A stretch of DNA of 63,946 nucleotides, counting the filler, from Reticulomyxa filosa (Eukaryota > Protista > Foraminifera), in assembly GCA_000512085.1 (NCBI GenBank). It is 19 parts of 19 records of this genome, joined end to end, with 100 filler letters (N's around TTAATTAATTAA, not from the genome) between each part and the next. Parts side by side here need not be neighbours in the genome. Positions count along the whole stretch, not along the records: positions 1 to 10,322 come from ASPP01046645.1; 18 more parts are not named here. One strand, written 5' to 3'. This document shows positions 1-10,268 of the stretch, one piece after another. A program made the position numbers and the translations under genes. The notes beneath the pieces were generated by a model that saw nothing but the letters and a program-made list of their open reading frames with translations, searched no databases and was not told the origin of the DNA. Position 1 is the first letter of the stretch, and each line of letters begins with the position of its first letter.

Positions 1-547
1 CACTTGTGTCACTTTTACTCAAATTTTGTGTATTAAGACTACCCCCATAAGATTACTTTTTCAGTTTTTGAAAAGCATAACATTTAATAGTACTGGAAAA
101 AATATGAAGTTTGGTTAACACAATCATGGAAGATGTCAATGTTAGATTTATCGCTGAAAGAAACAAATTTAGCACTGGAAAAACTCTTTGAAATACGAAA
201 AACCCAATATTGTTAGTTTTTGAAGGGTAGTACCTTTGAAAACACAAAAAAAAACTATCTACTGTCGATATCAAATTTGTTAACTGAAGTTGTTTGTTGG
301 AAAGGACGTTTATCTGATAAAGATACATCAATATCTGCTTAGATTTAAAGTTCATTTGAAAATCTTTTTTGGAGAAACGATGCAAAGCAAAAGTCTGTTA
401 CCAAAGATAATTGCATAGTCGAAAGAAAGTCTTATCAAAAAATTAAGCAATTAGTTTCCAATTGACTAGGCAACATTGCAAAATTTGTCTAGTTCAAGTC
501 AATTTCTTGCTAAATGGAAAGAAAAAAGTCAATAGCAATTTCTACAC

Positions 548-3133
548 TTGTCTTCTGCTAGTAATGAAATAAATTGGAAACATAAACCAATTAATGCAGA
601 TATAGTCAATCGATGTGAAAACTCAAGAGATGTTAAAAGCAAAATTAGTAATGTCAAGAATCACTACTACATACAACTCATTCACAAAAGACCAAATCTA
701 TTTCATAATGAAGATATTGGAGATCAAAACACAACAAAAACCTGGAAACAAGTAGAAAAAAAATGAAATTATAAGATCAAGTATTGCATGTACAAGATTA
801 TTTGACATCTAAAAATACACAAACATTGGCAAATAGACTGTAAGAATAGATAAATAATATTCAACAGTGCTGTCAATGACAAACATCAATTGAATGTTGC
901 ATTGTAACAATTGACAGGTTGTATCATTGGTCCTGCAAAGATTAATATTGGAACTATGTCAGTGTAGAGGAAATAAGTCGTTGTAGAATGATTCGTTGTA
1001 CAAGAAGCGCAAGAAAGTGCATAAATTAAAAAGGGGTTCCAATCATGGCACAATACATATGGGTTATTGTTGCAAATGACAAAATCGATAAATGCAATAT
1101 TTGAACAAATCAGTTGACTATCTGTTGGATATTTCTTCGACTTATGACATAGCGTCGATAGATGGATTGAGATATAGAATGATGAAAGATTTTTTATTAA
1201 GATGGAGGATGTACTGGTGGCTAGAAAGCATCCGCAAAGACATAGTGGAACAGTTGTGCTGAATGGAATAAGATCCAGTGAACAATATTCGAAACATGAT
1301 TACCACAATGATCATCACTGTCGACTGTTATTCGTGTTGTAAATCAACAATATCACACAAGCAGTCCAGCATCCGATTCAGTTAGGTATTTTTGCATATA
1401 ATGTGGCATTGTGGACATCCATTTACACGAGTGATGAAAAAAGATATAGTTGCAGTTGGATCAGTTGCAGCATAGTTTGGACAGCGTACCTACTTAGGCA
1501 TCCAAATGGAAGATGTTGTTGGCTAAAGATAAGACACAGTTGATTAAGTTCAAGATTAAGAACAAGATGAAATATCTAATAACGAAATTACTGCTCAATA
1601 GAATATACATCCAAGAAGCATATTATGTCAAATATTTGGAGTTGATCATGGACTACAAGATGACATAATGGCAGCATGTCAATTTAGTCTATGGAAAGGT
1701 ATATATGAAATTGGTATATTTAACATTTATCTACTCCTACAAGTGCATTCGACATAGCTTATCAGTGTACAAATTGTTATACACAGCAACCATTAGTCCA
1801 TCATTGGAGTATGCATGCGCAATCTGGAACGAGTAGCTGAATCGCACAAACAACGGCTAAACAGGATCCAAAGAATTTCAATGTGCAAGATTCTTGGTGT
1901 GATGAATTCGACAACATACAACACTGTAAATTTGATATCACAATTGCCTCAATTGAAACTAAAAAAGCAACAAGAAGAAGTGAAGATGCTCCAGAAATGT
2001 GTTAGATGGAGCAACGAGTTCACTAGTACAAACTGACAATTACATACTAATTGATGATATTCGTTTGTAGTGGAAAATTATATAATTTATACATAGAATA
2101 AACCAACATGTCAGAAATCGTGATGCCAAGGTTAAATCACGATGATATAATATATTATAACAAGCTTCCAAATCAAATTTCTAGACTTCCACGCTCCAGC
2201 AAGTCACCATTTGAAAAATGGAGCAAGCCAATACAAGAGCAGATATTAGCATCACTGGACGACAAGACTATTGTAATATTCGCAGATTTGAGCATCAAGT
2301 CAGACGAAGTGGCAAAGATTGCAAGGTTTAAAGCAAAAATGGAAAAATTGGAGTTACTCAGAAGGCCAGACAAGCAATCTACGTTCACTAATGTCTATGT
2401 ACTTAATATATTCTTCACGGAAAATTGGAACATGCATTGTGCGAATGAAGGGAACAACATGGAACTGCACAAGCACCCGAAACAATTCTTGTGCAGCCTG
2501 ATTGAAGCAAAGTCATTTGAAAAGATTGTGCTCCACAAGTTGGAAGCTCACGAGAGCAAATTTATTTGCAGAATCATCACTGTCAAAGTTTAACTTAATG
2601 GTTACTTGTTCAAGATCAAACAAGATTACACACCAGATTGCAAGTGGTGCGAAGGATAAGAAGAAACAGTGTAGCACTTCCTGATGGAGTTCTCACATTA
2701 TGGAGGACTTAGAGATGCATGGCAAGCAGCAATCAAGCATTATTGACGCATTTGCAATTCGAGAAATCGAACTTACTGAGTTTGGTGGTCGGCGACAAAT
2801 TATTAGGCCTGATACCAGAATTAAAGTTGTCAAAGAACTTGCAAAGTTCATTGTGACAACGTGAAGAAAGATTTAAATTCAACTTAAAATTTATTTTCTG
2901 ACAACTACTCAATTTCCTTTATAATATTAACAACTTTGTTTATTTTTGTTTTGTAAACCTTTTGTTTTCTTTTAAGTGGTACTATGACATATTTTGGTCA
3001 ATGTGCTTAAACTTGCTTTTGTTTGTATTTTGGGGAATAGCGGGGCTCAAAATCAGTGTAGTGTGAAAGATGAAGCTTGGAGTATCATGACACCTTCACA
3101 GCCCGACCAGTGCAAAAAAAAGAAAAAGAAAAC
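548..3133 (+). mobile_element. Decayed non-LTR retrotransposon (I-group-like LINE: RT, RNase H remnant, C-terminal CCHC knuckle, A-rich tail)
   Basis: Degenerate RT motifs occur in order: GFQSWHNT (~1035), LLDISSTYD (~1122), LPQ*SSLS..LLFVL*IN (~1300-1350), GIFAYNVALW (FADD-like, ~1385), WKMLLAKDKT (~1507) and VKYLELIMDYKMT*W (~1627). They are followed by QRLNRIQRISMCKILGVMNSTT, the RNase H start IVIFADLS (~2270), PDCKWCEG*EETV*HFL (~2633-2683) and an A-rich tract at ~3114-3133. Many stops and frameshifts. Confidence 0.88.
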
Positions 3134-4260
3134 ACTATTGTTATATAAACTTGGAACTACTGTTTGTTGCTTAGTTTGTTGACTATTTACAACGTCCATA
3201 CTGAACAGCGACGAGAAATAATAAAACAAAAAAAAAGAAAGTTTTTGTTCAAGGGGACTTTTTTAATTTTAAGAATCCAGCAGAATTAACACTTGCAATC
3301 TCAAAAACAAAATTGATGTTTAACATTTTAAATGTTTAAAAAATAATTTTACAAGTTTCAATTAAATGTGCTCCTTATCCAAATGTCGAAATTTTAATGG
3401 TATGTTTTTACTTTGTTCGTGAACAGAAATATGTTTGTTCTTCAATCCAATTTTATATTTAAAGAATTCTGTTTTTTCTTATTTGTTTCAAAAGTTGGAA
3501 TTACAGTTGATCATTAATTCAATTGGTACGCATAAAGATAACAGAGTACTTTATTAAATATTTACCTCGTTTTTTTTCTCTTACTTAATTTTTTGTAAAA
3601 TCAATTGAAGGATTTAGACTTTAATTCATTGCTTATTTGCAATAGATCAAAATAAAAAACAACATCTTTTTTGAGTGACTTTTAAAAAACTTGAAGAGCA
3701 ATAGAACTGTTAGGGATTGATATCTCCATTGATATCGCAAGAGTTCTTCAAGAGCTTTAATATCAGCACGAAGATCTGCTCATATAAAAGATATCAGTAC
3801 ATCTCTAGATTAATTCAATTATTGGTGTGTACGTCATTGCTCTTTTCACCTCCGTGCGTATCACCTCCACGTCGAACGTATACACGTATTAAATGTAGCA
3901 TTTTTATGCTATCAAAACCATTCAATCTGGCTCATTCTGTTAGATTTGTGGTCAAGAGTATTCACACATTGAGTTATCACGTTTACACAATTTTGTAATT
4001 CATGCAATCCTTTGTACTTGACCGTTGAAATTGTAGAGAAATCCTCACATATATATGGGTCAGAGCGTGGTCCTGCTTGGCTCAAAAACTCTCATGCACG
4101 TCATTTACTTTTTTTTGTTCTTTAATTTAACAAATCACGCTTCCTGTAGGGAAATAGAGTCTAAATTGTAACTCGAAAACGTAAAGCTAAATTAAAAAAT
4201 AAAAGAGTTGAGAAGAAATTATTATTACATTAAAATGATAGAGTCAATTATGACTCCGTA

Positions 4261-7200
4261 TCACGTAGTGCGTTGTACTACACTCCTTTGGGCAAAGGTT
4301 TTCTCAAGCATCCTTTCAGAATAGGAATCCTTTGGATTAACAAGCCAAAAAAAATCACAAAAGTATTTGTGCACAACATTTGCAATTTTTTTGTTTGAAA
4401 AAGAAAAAAAGAAACTAAAGGATGAGTTCAATAGTGTTTGAATAATTGAAGCAAATGATGTATACGCATCCGCATTGGCTTTGTAGTGTTCAATAAAATA
4501 TTGTTTCATTTTCAGATAAGCTTCCATTTCATTGTTTGTGTTGTCATTTACAGCAACTTGTGACGTATTTATTTTGTTGCTTTGATACACAAGTTTTTTA
4601 TAACTTTTGAATACTTGACTAAAAAAATTATAAGTTACAAATTTTTTTTGGAATTGTATTGTGAAAACTGCATTTCTTTATATAGAAAATGTTAACATTT
4701 ACAACAAGAAAAAAATAAGCTTAATTCGCGTTCCCAAAATAAGCAAAACGTTATCATTGTCAGTATTTTGTGATTGTTGGTTCTGCTGCTCTTCGATATA
4801 CTTTATCTCATCGGTCTCATTATCGAACGTATCCAAAATTTGAGCAAACAACAGCCCAGTTGCAAACCAGACCATGCCAATCATGAAGAAGACAAAAAAA
4901 AAGGTCAGATAATAATTGGTCGATAATACACTATCATCTAAGAAAACATCAATATTTGATAAAACAAGGTTTGATTGAGGAATGAAAAGATTATGTATAA
5001 ATAAAAAAAAATGTGAAAGATACGTAACACATAATATCGCTCCATCCATTTTGAAAAGACATTTGAGTCAAGGTTCTTATCGCATTTAAGTTTGTGTCAA
5101 AGTTAATGTTAGGATCATTTCCGTCGATTACCTCCATAAGGTTCGATTTTCCAGCAAACAATGCAACTCCCAGCCTCATAAACGAAAACATAAAAATAAC
5201 AATTAAAGCAAACAACGAACAATATTTTGTGAGAGCTGAATACAATGGCATTATTATCCGTTGTGAAGATGGAAGTATCGTAAAAATACGGGTTAAAGAC
5301 ATCACGAGCATTGTTAGTTGTAAGGTTTCATAGCCCATAAAACAAGAATAAATAATCGCAACTATTGCGCCACTGAACAAAAGGAATTCCACCAAGTTCA
5401 CCACATTCCATATTTTCCTATCCATTCGAGACCTTTTTAAAATAAAAAGACAATTGTTGTTATCATTTCATTTATACATTTTTTGTTTTAATGACATGAA
5501 AAATACCAGTAAACAACGTTGGATTGCTCTTCATCATTATTATTTACTTCTGTATGATTTACTTCTGATGATTTACTTTGTAGATTTATTTCTTTATGAT
5601 TTACTTTTGTATTCTTTACTTCTTTATGATTTACTCCTTCGTGATCCTTAAATCCTAGTTATTTTTTTATGTTTGCTAGTGTTCTTTAAAGGTTTTGTGC
5701 ACATATATAAATAAAGAAATGTTAAATGTTTACCAATGACGTCAAAAAATCGACAAAAACCAAAAGCGAACCAACGTAAAAATATCTCGATTGCGTTGAA
5801 GATAAAACAAGTAATTAAAACACCTTTGGTCGCAGTAATATCGGGCCCATCCAACTGCAGTAGACAACTTGCAATTAGAGCAGGAGCGATTCCGACAATG
5901 ATAATAACGTGACGACGCCATTTTTGCTGGAAAACTTTTCAAACAAAACAAATCATCAAATCTGAATCTCAAAATTATGTGTATTACAATGAATACATCA
6001 ATGCACACTAGGAGTATACGTTTACTTGTCACTACAAAACTATTTCGTTCCAAACATTTTTGTGTGCATGAAATGTATTTATCACTTGTGCATGAAGTGC
6101 ATTTATCACATTTACGTTCCAGGAAAATTTTACGTGCTTGAGAAAAGGTAATATTCCAAGGGATAATTAATTCCTTAAACATGTCCTTAAAATTTTGCTC
6201 TTGATCCTCATTCATTGTATTTTGTTGTTTCTGTGGCTTTATTATACGTGTGAGTGAAACTCACGTTATTTAGTCATTATTTGTTTTTAAAAAAAGATAT
6301 TAAAAAAAAAAAAAAAAGAAAAGTAAAAGTAATATTAGTCGAAATGATAAACTAACTTTATCAGCAAGATACTCACACATATTCATAAGCTCCTTGACAC
6401 GATTTGCCTTTTCGGCAAAGTAATATGCACAATGCAATGCATCGTCCTTTCGCTTTTTTTTTGCCAATTCATCGGCCACTCTACTTTCTTTGAAAGACTT
6501 TTGAAATCGACCAGCAAGAATTGGATTCAATATCAGTCCCGTAATAATTAATACGAGACAAAAGACAAAACTTGCCCAACCACGACTGTACGCTACATCC
6601 GTATAGTTTTCTCCCGTTGGCATGAGGACAAAAGTAGTTAGTAACGCTTGTGGAAAGCCATTAAAGTTATTTGTCAATTCGTTAGTATTTGAGTTACGAA
6701 AATACACTCCTCCTGTGAAATAGAGGAAAAAGGTTGAACAAAAAGGTGTTTTTTTTTTTTTTGGGTCAAATGAAAAATAAAGAGAGTAAGGGATAGAAAA
6801 TGAGCAGTATACGTTTTATGTGTATTGCTAACCAAAAGAAGCCGCCAGTAATATCATGCACATCCATACAAAAAAAATTTCTCGCGCATCAAAAATGGCT
6901 CGAATATAATTTCGAGAAAGTTCATAAAGATGGTCGATACTAATTACTACAAGCATCCCTTCCAATGGCACATATGACGTCAACGCGATCCCACTTGCTA
7001 GTCTCAGTATGCAAGCGATAGTGAAAAAAATCACTAGCAATACGTACAATATATCCCTCATATCTATCCTTTGGATAAGACACTCTCCGTTAATTTTTCC
7101 TTGGCTGCCATCATTGTTGTTTTGGTTGTGATTTTTTTGACAACGATATTGGCGTATCTTATCTTTCTTTTCTTTGGGCAGAAATTTTAAAATTATATCG

Positions 7201-7526
7201 ATAATCATGAAAAATAGTAGTATCAGTTTTACCCATTCACATTGCTTCGCATCCCAAGCACCTTTTTTTGTAACGTGGCCAGTTTCAAAAGACATTATTA
7301 TTATTTTTTTTTTTTAAAATGTTTTAACTTATTATTAGAAATACCACCTCGACTATTTTAATGAAATATTGCCATACTGTGCCCACCAAATAACGGTATT
7401 TGTTCAGGGTCCAGCTACTACACACTTCATACATCGACGAGGTGTGTAGTTTATCTTTTTCATTTAAAGCACGAATGGCCATATACAGCAACAAATCCTC
7501 TTTGTCCTCAAGTCCTTTAATCAACT
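4261..7526 (-). CDS. Two-pore channel (TPC)-like 2x6TM cation channel domain, multi-exon; probably the C-terminal part of the dCache gene upstream
   Basis: Repeat I: S2 KLILLFFMIIDIILKF, pore NFNGFPQALLTTFVLMPTGENYTDV, S6 LIITGLILNPILAGRFQKSF followed by KRKDDALHCAY. Repeat II: S2 IEIFLRWFAFGFCRFF, S3 WNVVNLVEF, S5 FSFMRLGVALFAGK, pore NFDTNLNAIRTLTQMSFQNGWSDIM, S6 FFFVFFMIGMVWFATGLLFAQILDTF. Exons join through phase-compatible GT..AG introns. The exact last exon is uncertain. Confidence 0.88.
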
Positions 7527-7619
7527 CTTTTTTTTTTATTGTTTGTAAACATACGTACACAAACATGATTGAACGTATTCATTTTGATTAGAGCCAGAAA
7601 CAAACAAGTAGAAACTTAC

Positions 7620-10268
7620 TATCGAGTACATTTGTGAGCTTTTCTGACTCTGATTGCTTTTGTTTGGAGTCTTCCGATTGACTTTTCTTTTTTTTTTTAC
7701 AACATAGGCCTAATATCGACTCAATAATCATTTCTGACTTTGATTGCTTTTGTTCTGAGTCTTCTGATTGCTTTTGTTCGGAGTCTTCTGATTGCCTTTT
7801 CTTTTCTTTTTTACAAAATAGGAACCCAATCATCACCAAAGCAGCGAAGATCAAGATAACAGCAAGCGTGTACATTAATCTTGGTTTTGGTTTAATATTC
7901 ATTCCAACAATTGCTATCCCTACAATCACAAATGAGGAAATGAACGGCAAAGAACATGTATCAGCTTGTTGTTTTAGTCGCTCCAACAAATATACAACAA
8001 CCACAATGACAACAATGTCAATAAACCAGGTTGCAATAATACTATCTCGGCTTCTATCGGTTAACCCGCTCATCGATACGGAAGTGACAATTATCCAACT
8101 GAGAGACTCATAGTTTAATTCACGCCCAGCATAGACTCTAGGGTAATCCAGAGGCATTCGAATTTGAGATGGAGTACTATCATTGCGTAATCTTTTCAGT
8201 TTGTACACTTCTAAAATTACTTTAGATATAATTTTAATGTGTTCATTTGTGTAATTTTTCACAGGAACGAGCATGGATCCCGAAGGTGTTGTTTGAATAT
8301 TCGTGTCTATTTCTCCTTGCACAGAACGTTGCGACTCCAATGTTGGACCTTTAGATGCAGCGAGAAGATAATAGTTTGGAGCCTCTTCAAAAATCCATGA
8401 TATCAGTTCGAATCCCCTTTTCAGGCTGTTGTCCCTATTTGCTGTCGAATTTAAATACTTGCTCAGCGTCTTTTTCGTCAGTTGTCGTCCCAATGATCAC
8501 AGCAGCAAAATAAATCGATCATTCAAATATTTTATTTTGAGTATACGTGTAGACGAGAGGAAAGAAATTAACATGACCAACAAGATTTTTCTTTTTTTTA
8601 CCTGGTAGTTGTAGTCAACAACGAAGACTGCCACCAACACTCCATCTTCATCTTGAATGACTGTAGATGCCTTTACGAATAACAAAAATAACAAATATAC
8701 AACCACTTCACATTTGCAACATTAAATAAATAAATAAACATTAAACTCCAAGACCCTCGCTTGATTCAGACGCAAAAAAAAATGTTGTCCATGTCATATT
8801 CCGTGATCGTGTTACAACAGTATATGTTCCTTGGGACGTGTTGAAAATGCTTTTGTAACTATCTCTTGCAGCCTTACAATCGGATGTTTCATAGGATAGG
8901 CGTTCACTGTTGTTCATTAAATCCTATATTCGAATGTTACAAAAAATACACTTTTGCAAATGCCATTGGATAAGTACAAACAAGATTGATGTTATTAACA
9001 TATATACACACCTCAAATGTTGACCCAGGAAATGCTTGTTCCAATGTGCCATTGAATGTATAAGTTATGGCATCAATATACCAAGGTCGACATCGAGGAT
9101 CGTAATTCTTCAAACTGACTCCAGAATCCTTTTTTTTAAAAAAAAAATTATTGGAGCCACTTTTTTGTGAGCAACAGAGAAAAGTGTTGAAAAGCTAACT
9201 TACATTTGCTTCCCTTTGTCCATTTTCATTTGCACGAAAGTATGTTAATTCTCCGTTTGTTTCGTTCGACACACCACCTACCCAAAAATCACTGCCGTTG
9301 ACCTCTGCTGAACTCATGTTACCATTTGGAAACCCTAACGCAATGCCACGTATTTCATACGGATTGTCAATATCTCGAAAAATTTTCATTATATCTGTCA
9401 AAAATTTGTCATAGTACCCTGTTTCATCTGGTTGCAAATCACCACGTTTCATGCGTTGCACTATAGTTTCGGCCATTCTCTGTGCATTTTTGTCGATATT
9501 TATTTTTTTTTTTTGTGAAAGCACAAGAAAGTACATGTGGTTGGTCCCAAAAAAATTTGACTCGTTCCGAATTTGTGTAGTATTCTTCCTCCATCATTCC
9601 ATCTTTCAACACTATTTTGACAGACACAAACACAAACGACACAATTTATTTGTGATATTCCCTATTTTCTTTTTTTAAGTAACCTGATTGGACGGATTTT
9701 GGTTCGCTGATGGCCCATATTAAGTACGTGCTTCCCAATAAAGCAATTAAAGTGCCTTGCATGCACGAGTTAAGTGTATCCCAAATTTTAGGAATACTCA
9801 GGTTTTTCTTGGAATCTGGTAAAAGAGGAACTTGATCTTTTTCAGACTTTCCAGATGGATTATTGAAAATTTTGTAAATTTTGTAACATTGGCAAATTGT
9901 TAGTGCAAATACTGGGCCAAGTATTACTCCTGTTACAATCCCTGATATTAACAGTGCATAATCGTAATTTTTAAAAAATTGTTGCTCGTCGAACAAAATG
10001 CCTATGGGGAAAAAAAAAGGGGTTAAAATACACTTTAAAAAAAGTAACAAAGGTAAAATAAAGGCTTACCAACTAGTGCGTATTGTTGTTGATCTACAAT
10101 GGTCTCGTTACCTTGCAATATCAAACTGGAGAATGTGATCGGGAACTTTGCAATACCTGCATTTTGACCATTTCCTACAGGTACGTTTAATGTATCGTTT
10201 CCGATTTGACTGGTATTATATTTACCGTTGAGTGATTCCAATGCCTCGTCGGAATTTTGTTCACACTC
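7620..10268 (-). CDS. dCache_1-type extracytoplasmic sensor domain flanked by TM helices, preceded by the probable tail of a second Cache domain; 5'-truncated at the contig edge
   Basis: Predicted spliced translation: ..YALVG|ILFDEQQFF, TM, loop, TM, then ..FFWDQPH|RMAETIVQRMKRGDL..IRGIALGFPNG..|DSGVSLKNYDPRCRPWYIDA..TWTTFFFASESSEGLG|ASTVIQDEDGVLVAVFVVDYNYQ|TLSKYLNS..ISWIFE..YLLAASKG..LSWIIVTSV, followed by 3 TM helices. This is the classic dCache_1 motif order. Confidence 0.85.
7644..7823 (-). repeat. Coding tandem repeat (SEDSEQKQ, 24-nt units) within a larger internal duplication in the cytosolic linker
   Basis: FLFCKKEKKRQSEDSEQKQSEDSEQKQSKSE is repeated as GLCCKKKKKSQSEDSKQKQSESE. Confidence 0.85.

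Follow-up and report, generated by a model that had tools for sequence, protein, structure and literature searches.

Does the freshwater foraminiferan Reticulomyxa filosa encode an ion channel that carries its own Cache sensor in the same polypeptide? The question is raised by a gene in a 63,946-nt stretch of its genome (assembly GCA_000512085.1; the whole of this stretch is called the window below). The gene lies on the minus strand of contig C46645 (ASPP01046645.1), which is AT-rich (GC 0.29-0.40) and has exact and near-exact protein matches to R. filosa; the assembly comprises 101.9 Mb in 50,809 contigs. An initial annotation, made from the DNA sequence, had read the gene as a dCache sensor joined to a two-pore channel (TPC) and as a candidate new class of ligand-gated channel. 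Among the extracellular sensors of bacteria, none is commoner than the Cache domain. Eukaryotic examples are mainly those of alpha2delta and CACHD1; what ligands these bind in nature and what part they play in signalling is debated, and we know of no characterised TPC with an extracytoplasmic ligand-binding domain. Our analysis indicates that the sensor and a two-repeat channel are almost certainly parts of one polypeptide. This conserved domain architecture is real and, within the literature searched, undescribed. As judged by its alignments, the gene is not unique: it is one of the paralogs in a family of very large membrane proteins that extends across Rhizaria.

Sensor and channel in one gene

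A search of the same genome with exon 8, where the sensor ends, found three paralog loci. In C3195 a 666-codon stop-free frame holds the C-terminal half of the Cache domain, one transmembrane (TM) helix, the cytosolic linker, a complete Ion_trans repeat (Pfam E 6.8e-8) and an EF-hand; immediately upstream, a 312-codon frame supplies the sensor's first half and a TM helix. The 582-codon open frame of C10616, the closest paralog, runs from the sensor into channel helix S5, is 35% identical to the window gene and shares its three-helix segment by sequence. C8945 has the same sensor-to-channel continuity. A HMMER search with the 666-residue C3195 frame returned 209 proteins (E <= 0.001), many of them 2100-2600 amino acids long and aligned in one stretch over query residues ~18-650. 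Continuous alignments were obtained to EukProt proteins of Nonionella stella and Bolivina argentea (2100-2500 amino acids), and the frame also matched proteins of the cercozoan Paulinella micropora (2400-2600 amino acids) and environmental contigs. For both foraminifera the public data consist of transcriptomes made from mRNA (PMC8153729), and we infer that the EukProt sets stem from these. Thus, as the C3195 frame is uninterrupted and the relatives have the same domain order, the fusion is independent of the 93-nt intron of the window gene described below. The initial annotation had suggested a search for the same architecture in other foraminiferan and rhizarian data, and the Nonionella, Bolivina and Paulinella proteins bear it out. 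A word-based homolog search from the Nonionella ectodomain gave 3 proteins, too few for mapping the distribution of the family.

The part of the gene inside the window comprises its 3' 1417 codons, in 16 minus-strand exons (10268..4699) separated by 15 introns and delimited by homology to relatives and by GT/AG sites (Table 1). The 5' end is truncated: the frame stays open to 10322, and the gene runs past the end of the contig. Every intron is of the GT..AG type; the lengths are 55-132 nt, and in roughly half of the 15 an A-rich tract precedes the AG. Phase was taken as the running sum of exon lengths, and every exon was read alone in its implied frame. The running phase was consistent and free of stops over 4254 nt, up to the TAA at 4701..4699, in agreement with the single continuous frame that had been claimed. 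Exon 14 was kept in the model because the frame from exon 13 to exon 15 needs it. Searches from the window used single exons, public proteins or uninterrupted paralog open reading frames (ORFs).

The junction between the two halves is a phase-1 intron of 93 nt (7619..7527; donor GAT A/GTAAGT, acceptor ...AAAAAG/AG TTG), exactly as in the initial annotation. Without splicing, the upstream ORF stops at TAA 7590..7588 and the next ATG is at 7566; the gap of ~21 bp between the unspliced ORFs was likewise correctly given. The public record of the gene, ETN98453.1 / RFI_39045 ("hypothetical protein"; P0052 in our set), was mapped back to the window and uses the same intron, with the junction ..NVLD-K-LIKG... 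As a prediction the junction was therefore right but not new.

In other respects RFI_39045 appears to be mis-annotated at both ends. Its start at 8741 is artificial, the intronic sequence 8658..8500 is read through and exons 1 to 6 are omitted, which leaves only the C-terminal half of the sensor and cuts the Cache domain in two. At the 3' end the model adds 137 codons without homology through a 27-nt 'intron' (4702..4676), half the length of the shortest among the other 15. Because this 'intron' is so short, 4699 is the more likely end of the ORF rather than the 4264 exon of the public model. The 3' limit of 4261 in the initial annotation hangs on the same doubtful intron and was not retained; the tail ORF (4264-4677) matched no Pfam family. 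A second locus is affected as well. RFI_17432 (377 amino acids, sensor; P0002) and RFI_17433 (1025 amino acids, channel; P0003) are neighbouring models on contig C13277 (L005/L006). By comparison with C3195 they are together one Cache-channel gene and their split is an annotation artefact: what they divide is a conserved stretch of the sensor that C3195 has in one piece (..LPLDFPQLTASRIRYYD..). Truncated models of this kind, one without half of its sensor and one split, hid the architecture, and the truncation of RFI_39045 is probably the reason why it stayed unnoticed.

Automatic labels touch on it. The UniRef entry of the window gene (X6LAA3, 1195 amino acids) is named "Ion transport domain-containing protein", a metagenomic relative is labelled 'Ion transport protein/MCP-like first PDC sensor domain' by JGI, and another relative bears the automatic JGI name "two pore calcium channel protein, plant". 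Beyond such labels, no description of a Cache-TPC, Cache-Ion_trans or Cache-voltage-gated-type fusion was found in the literature searched, which did not cover Dataset S3 of PMC8915833.

The double-Cache ectodomain

Pfam was silent on the Cache domain, and we therefore used a family profile and a structure model. The profile (A1) was an alignment of the channel-adjacent ectodomain (ECD2) from 24 relatives. Compared with solved structures, it matched 6mni (PscC; 7.9e-5) and 7k5n (a diguanylate-cyclase sensor; 1.1e-4), followed by PctA, Mlp37/24, PctC, CACHD1 (0.11) and CitA, and nothing else of note. The alignments to dCache sensors span the hallmark yDpRxRpWY and GVvxiD blocks. An AlphaFold2 model of Nonionella P0006:990-1445 was computed with the A1 alignment (pLDDT 85, pTM 0.80), and each of its top 50 Foldseek matches (prob 1.00) was the dCache ligand-binding domain of a chemoreceptor or sensor kinase. 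VIA-align 2 aligned it at Z 15-18 with near-complete bacterial domains, for example 232/236 residues of Mlp24. Exons 4 to 8 of the window gene lie colinear on the A1 profile at 58-151, 162-192, 198-262, 264-285 and 289-460 (E 3.6e-13, 4.3e-17, 8e-8, 9e-5 and 8.7e-28, in order). A dCache fold of the window ectodomain is thus supported by the homolog model and by the colinear exons, as the initial annotation had supposed for 8050-9700.

ECD2 is flanked by TM helices on both sides, the second helix of exon 2 and the first helix of exon 8, and the same holds in relatives. Full-length relatives carry a second, upstream ectodomain (ECD1), which is also TM-flanked. The ECD1 profile matched the dCache structures 7k5n (2e-8) and 7w0w (8e-8), and by hhalign the two ectodomains are homologs (98.7%, E 3e-16). 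In the window the sequence ahead of the first TM helix amounts to ~75 residues. Exon 1 (10268..10070), which supplies most of them, scored E ~1 against the ECD1 profile and had no paralog match; its reading as a Cache tail is plausible by position only.

Directly after the RxWY motif, ECD2 contains a conserved helical, Cys-containing insertion of ~65 residues (RCR..., C..A...Y; model residues ~165-240 of P0006:990-1445), which ECD1 does not have. The insertion sits at the same loop as the VWA insertion of alpha2delta and CACHD1. A VWA insertion between RxWY and the third Tyr has been described for all eukaryotic dCache_1 proteins (PMC8915833). Nine relatives of full or nearly full length gave no Pfam match to VWA at E <= 0.01. 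The Rhizaria family looks like an exception to this generalisation and would be a counter-example to the published rule.

In dCache_1 domains that sense amino acids (dCache_1AA), the binding motif is Y-x4-R-x-W-Y ... Y ... D (PMC8915833). The window gene has its N-terminal half (YxxxxRxWY) in exon 5 (YDPRCRPWY) and the later Asp in exon 7 (VVD). Across the family the strict first half is present in 7/24 ectodomains, and R, W, third Y and D are kept in most, equivalence being judged from the alignment. Two R. filosa paralogs (P0001, P0003) lack the ligand-motif residues. An amino-acid-like ligand for ECD2 is a reasonable guess.

Compared with the bacterial dCache_1 sensors (PctA/B/C, Tlp3, Mlp24/37, TlpQ, PscC), the family shares the long N-terminal helix, the two PAS-like modules and the flanking TM helices, and largely keeps the Y....R.WY ... 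Y ... D columns. It differs in its output, which is an ion channel and not a kinase-control, GGDEF or kinase module, in the ~65-residue insertion of ECD2, and in scoring below the gathering cut-off of Pfam dCache_1.

The channel half and its possible control

Hydropathy places helices S1 to S6 twice in one polypeptide, and Pfam reports Ion_trans twice in the window (E 2.9e-6 in exon 11, 4.9e-11 in exon 15). Exons 10, 11, 13, 15 and 16 are colinear on the family channel profile. This profile (A2) comprised 27 family members, and the exons were mapped on a version built without the window's own protein. Against Arabidopsis TPC1 the A2 profile aligned in one stretch (profile 141-689 / residues 153-700, ~190 bits, E ~1e-55) that includes the inter-repeat region. 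Four-repeat voltage-gated calcium (Cav) and sodium (Nav) channels outscored TPC1 only by summing 4-6 stretches. The ESM Atlas language-model neighbours are TPC clusters. The TPC likeness of the family is that of a profile alignment and of these neighbours.

The pore motifs of the family are TGENY in repeat I and GEGW in repeat II. From these acidic filters and what is established for Cav and Nav channels, we infer that a dimer would form an acidic ring like the EEEE locus of Cav channels and would be permeable to Ca2+. S4 has one basic residue or none in repeat I and two or three in repeat II; with S4 so poor in charge, strong voltage gating seems unlikely. EF-hands between the repeats are present in paralogs and homologs. 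With plant TPC1 (Arabidopsis, PDB 5e1j/5tua) the family thus shares two six-helix Ion_trans repeats in one chain, a charge-poor S4 in repeat I and, in most members, the EF-hand pair between the repeats. It differs from TPC1 by ~1200-1900 additional N-terminal residues with two TM-flanked dCache ectodomains and by filters that are acidic and Cav-like, and the window copy differs further in having no detectable EF-hand.

The two halves are joined in a consistent topology. Three helices follow ECD2 in the window gene and in C10616 and one in nearly all other relatives, always an odd number. Because of this odd number and the Lys-rich segment after it, the protein fits an arrangement in which the sensor is extracellular or luminal and the channel begins on the cytosolic side. 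This had been argued from three helices in the initial annotation, and hydropathy agrees. The TM-loop-TM arrangement of exon 2 is that of Nonionella P0013 867-956. Full-length members run from a cytosolic N-terminus through TM, dCache ECD1, TM, loop, TM, dCache ECD2, one or three TM and a cytosolic linker into a channel of 2 x 6 TM. The domain order first given for the window holds for TM-loop-TM, the dCache-like ectodomain, the three TM helices and the two Ion_trans repeats; its opening Cache tail in exon 1 was matched by neither the ECD1 profile nor the paralogs.

Taken as a whole, we favour by a small degree the explanation that the window protein is a Cache-channel of the Rhizaria family, in which ligand binding to the dCache domain modulates a Ca2+/cation pore. 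A small molecule would bind the membrane-distal pocket of the dCache domain; since most of the YxxxxRxWY...Y...D motif is kept, it may be an amino acid or a related amine or carboxylate. Binding would displace the helix that leaves the dCache domain and crosses the membrane, as in bacterial chemoreceptors. The movement would pass through the linker into S1 of the charge-poor voltage-sensor-like domain and modulate the opening of a dimeric Ca2+/cation pore. Ligand control of gating, that is, a ligand-modulated Ca2+/cation channel, is the more tentative part of this explanation, and we stop somewhat short of favouring it on its own. Rather unlikely in its full form, if possible, is an undescribed class of ionotropic chemoreceptor in Rhizaria, in which a TPC1-like, Ca2+-permeable two-repeat pore would be gated directly by amino-acid-type ligands on the dCache domain of the same chain. 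If true, it would unite in cis what animals keep apart as alpha2delta and Cav, and it would be without precedent in the voltage-gated superfamily in having an extracytoplasmic ligand-binding domain; if located on food vacuoles or lysosomes, as TPCs are, it would be a luminal nutrient-gated channel.

Ionotropic glutamate receptors follow the same design principle: they combine a periplasmic small-molecule sensor of bacterial type with a tetrameric-type cation pore into a ligand-gated channel. They differ in having a periplasmic-binding-protein (Venus-flytrap) sensor, an inverted pore of the two-TM type and no voltage-sensor-like domains. A precedent for a Cache sensor covalently joined to an ion channel is given by the prokaryotic Cys-loop (pentameric) channels fused to MCP-N and Cache (Tasneem et al. 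2005, PMC549065). These are prokaryotic, belong to the pentameric superfamily and bind ligands through a domain of their own, to which the Cache domain is an addition. In the Rhizaria family a Cache sensor stands in series with a Cav/TPC-like pore, in a design conserved from Foraminifera to Paulinella. The design is a natural experiment for asking if a ligand bound to a Cache domain can control a channel of the voltage-gated type. It is also a candidate for the molecule by which amoeboid Rhizaria sense chemicals, or nutrients in food vacuoles, and it suggests a modular scaffold for engineered ligand-gated Ca2+ channels.

Several observations weigh against the favoured explanation. No RNA sequencing runs were listed for the window locus, where splicing is predicted, and the fold model of ECD2 was built on a Nonionella homolog and not on the window protein. 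The initial annotation had expected HMMER or HHpred to report dCache_1 and two Ion_trans domains; with Pfam on single exons Ion_trans was found twice, and dCache_1 had no match, at the thresholds used, in the window exons, the paralog ORFs or the public R. filosa models scanned. On PF02743 (dCache_1) the best relative scored 33.6 bits vs a 45-bit gathering score, and sub-threshold matches occurred in 6/24 ECD2s (best 2e-9). Paulinella P0035 passed the cut-off of PF22673 (MCP-like_PDC_1; 33.4 vs 27 bits). With PF02743 below its cut-off and PF22673 passed in P0035, the family is, on these profile scores, a divergent member of the Cache superfamily and not a Pfam-threshold dCache_1. The window channel half alone matched Cav3 domain II (1.2e-11) and bacterial Nav channels (NavAb-type) and not TPCs, so that the TPC-like reading first given holds for the two repeats and for the end-to-end alignment of the family profile with plant TPC1, and not for the window taken alone. 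Finally, the third Tyr of the ligand motif is Phe, filter II reads QNGW with Asn in place of the Glu of the GEGW consensus, and neither Pfam nor the profile detected an EF-hand in exon 12. Because of these last three departures the window copy may differ functionally from the family norm.

The strongest rival, which we consider possible but unlikely, holds that the Cache ectodomains act like an alpha2delta built into the chain, in folding, trafficking, anchoring at the surface or tonic modulation; the pore would be gated by Ca2+ through the EF-hands, by voltage or by lipids, and not acutely by a ligand. Alpha2delta and CACHD1 resemble the Rhizaria family in that a eukaryotic dCache domain is functionally tied to a cation channel of the voltage-gated type; there it is a separate subunit with a VWA insertion and a four-repeat Cav partner, whereas here it is fused to a two-repeat channel. 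The animal proteins modulate Cav trafficking and function and not pore gating (PMC8915833), which fits this rival, as do the EF-hands of relatives at the TPC1 position and the paralogs without ligand-motif residues. Retention of R, W, third Y and D in most family members argues the other way, and so does the exit helix of the sensor, which is covalently in series with the channel as in transmembrane signalling receptors; the charge-poor S4 speaks against strong voltage gating.

It is improbable that decay or neofunctionalisation has left the window copy a paralog that no longer works as a sensor-channel. QNGW for GEGW, the undetected EF-hand and the Phe in the motif would be expected of such a copy, and the two in-frame tandem repeats in its loops and the lack of any listed RNA run point the same way. 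Against this, ~1417 codons in 16 exons are without a stop or frameshift, 15/15 splice sites are intact, and the conserved blocks match the family profiles at E 1e-13 to 1e-28. Least probable by far is a pair of adjacent genes, a Cache receptor ending at 7588 and a channel starting near 7566 with the 93 nt as intergenic sequence or retained intron: the unspliced stop and ATG, and the public split of one paralog locus, speak for it, but a 21-bp gap is too small for a terminator and promoter, the gtaagt donor is canonical and the A-rich ..aaaaag acceptor is like those of other introns, the RFI_17432/17433 split falls in a segment contiguous in C3195, and uninterrupted frames and single transcripts span the junction in relatives.

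Feature coordinates and neighbouring sequences

Table 1. Features of the Cache-channel gene in the window (HMM, position on the family channel profile; filter, selectivity filter).
Feature	Position	Strand	Description
Exon 1	10070..10268	-	66 codons, ectodomain-like, upstream of TM helix; acceptor ..gtgaag/GAG, donor G/gtaagc
Exon 2	9684..10001	-	TM 9957..9907, loop of ~50 residues, TM 9756..9706 (hydropathy and splice sites)
Exons 3-7	9611..9535, 9479..9204, 9128..9012, 8923..8747, 8670..8602	-	ectodomain
Motif YDPRCRPWY (exon 5)	9078..9104	-	N-terminal half of dCache_1 amino-acid-binding motif
Exon 8, sensor part	8469..8044	-	first 142 codons; C-terminal end of ECD2 (whole ECD2 8044..9611)
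Three TM helices and Lys-rich segment (exon 8)	8043..7993, 7956..7906, 7866..7816	-	hydropathy
Charged low-complexity linker	7620..7815	-	end of exon 8; predicted cytosolic (KKEKKRQSEDSEQKQ...)
Key intron	7527..7619	-	93 nt, phase 1, gtaagt...aaaaag; from sensor half to channel half
Exon 9	7329..7526	-	cytosolic pre-S1 and helix IS1 (7380..7330); weak profile match (E 0.1), position right
Exon 10	6833..7261	-	repeat I S2-S5, S4 nearly without basic residues; HMM 82-218, E 6e-20
Exon 11	6357..6712	-	pore loop I, filter TGENY (6617..6603), IS6, start of linker; HMM 227-320, E 1.5e-18
Exon 12	6041..6236	-	inter-repeat linker, at position of relatives' EF-hand pair
Exon 13	5734..5934	-	repeat II S1-S2; HMM 407-470, E 2e-14
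Exon 14	5507..5654	-	low-complexity IIS2-IIS3 loop, without homology; least certain exon
Exon 15	5029..5432	-	repeat II S3-S5, pore helix, filter QNGW (5053..5042); HMM 482-619, E 6e-24
Exon 16	4699..4937	-	IIS6 and short C-terminus, TAA 4701..4699; HMM 622-681, E 8e-6
Extra 3' exon of public model	4264..4674	-	through 27-nt GT..AG 'intron' 4702..4676; doubtful coding sequence

The gene contains two in-frame tandem repeats, both in predicted coding loops. A 15-nt unit repeated 6.7 times (5538..5635) encodes 5-residue repeats in the exon of the IIS2-IIS3 loop, and a 24-nt unit repeated 2.5 times (7741..7800) encodes SEDSEQKQ repeats in the linker after the sensor. On the plus strand, window positions 1-4200 contain several ORFs, the longest at 2108..2593 (161 amino acids); those at 548-3179 match no Pfam family, and no gene could be assigned.

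The family is a multigene family in R. filosa, scattered over many short contigs (C3195, C13277, C10616, C8945, C16511, C18180, C8156, C10679, C3062, C22151). C3195 and C13277 carry an ECD1-like region upstream of ECD2 on the same strand. ECD1-like exons were also found on C8156, C10679, C3062 and C22151, and the missing 5' end of the window gene may lie on one of these orphan ECD1 contigs. Full-length Bolivina and Nonionella proteins gave weak Pfam matches to SAM_PNT (Pointed/SAM; E 0.002-0.003) within their long cytosolic N-terminus, at P0010 291-334 and P0011 408-451, a hint that a domain for oligomerisation or scaffolding precedes the first sensor.

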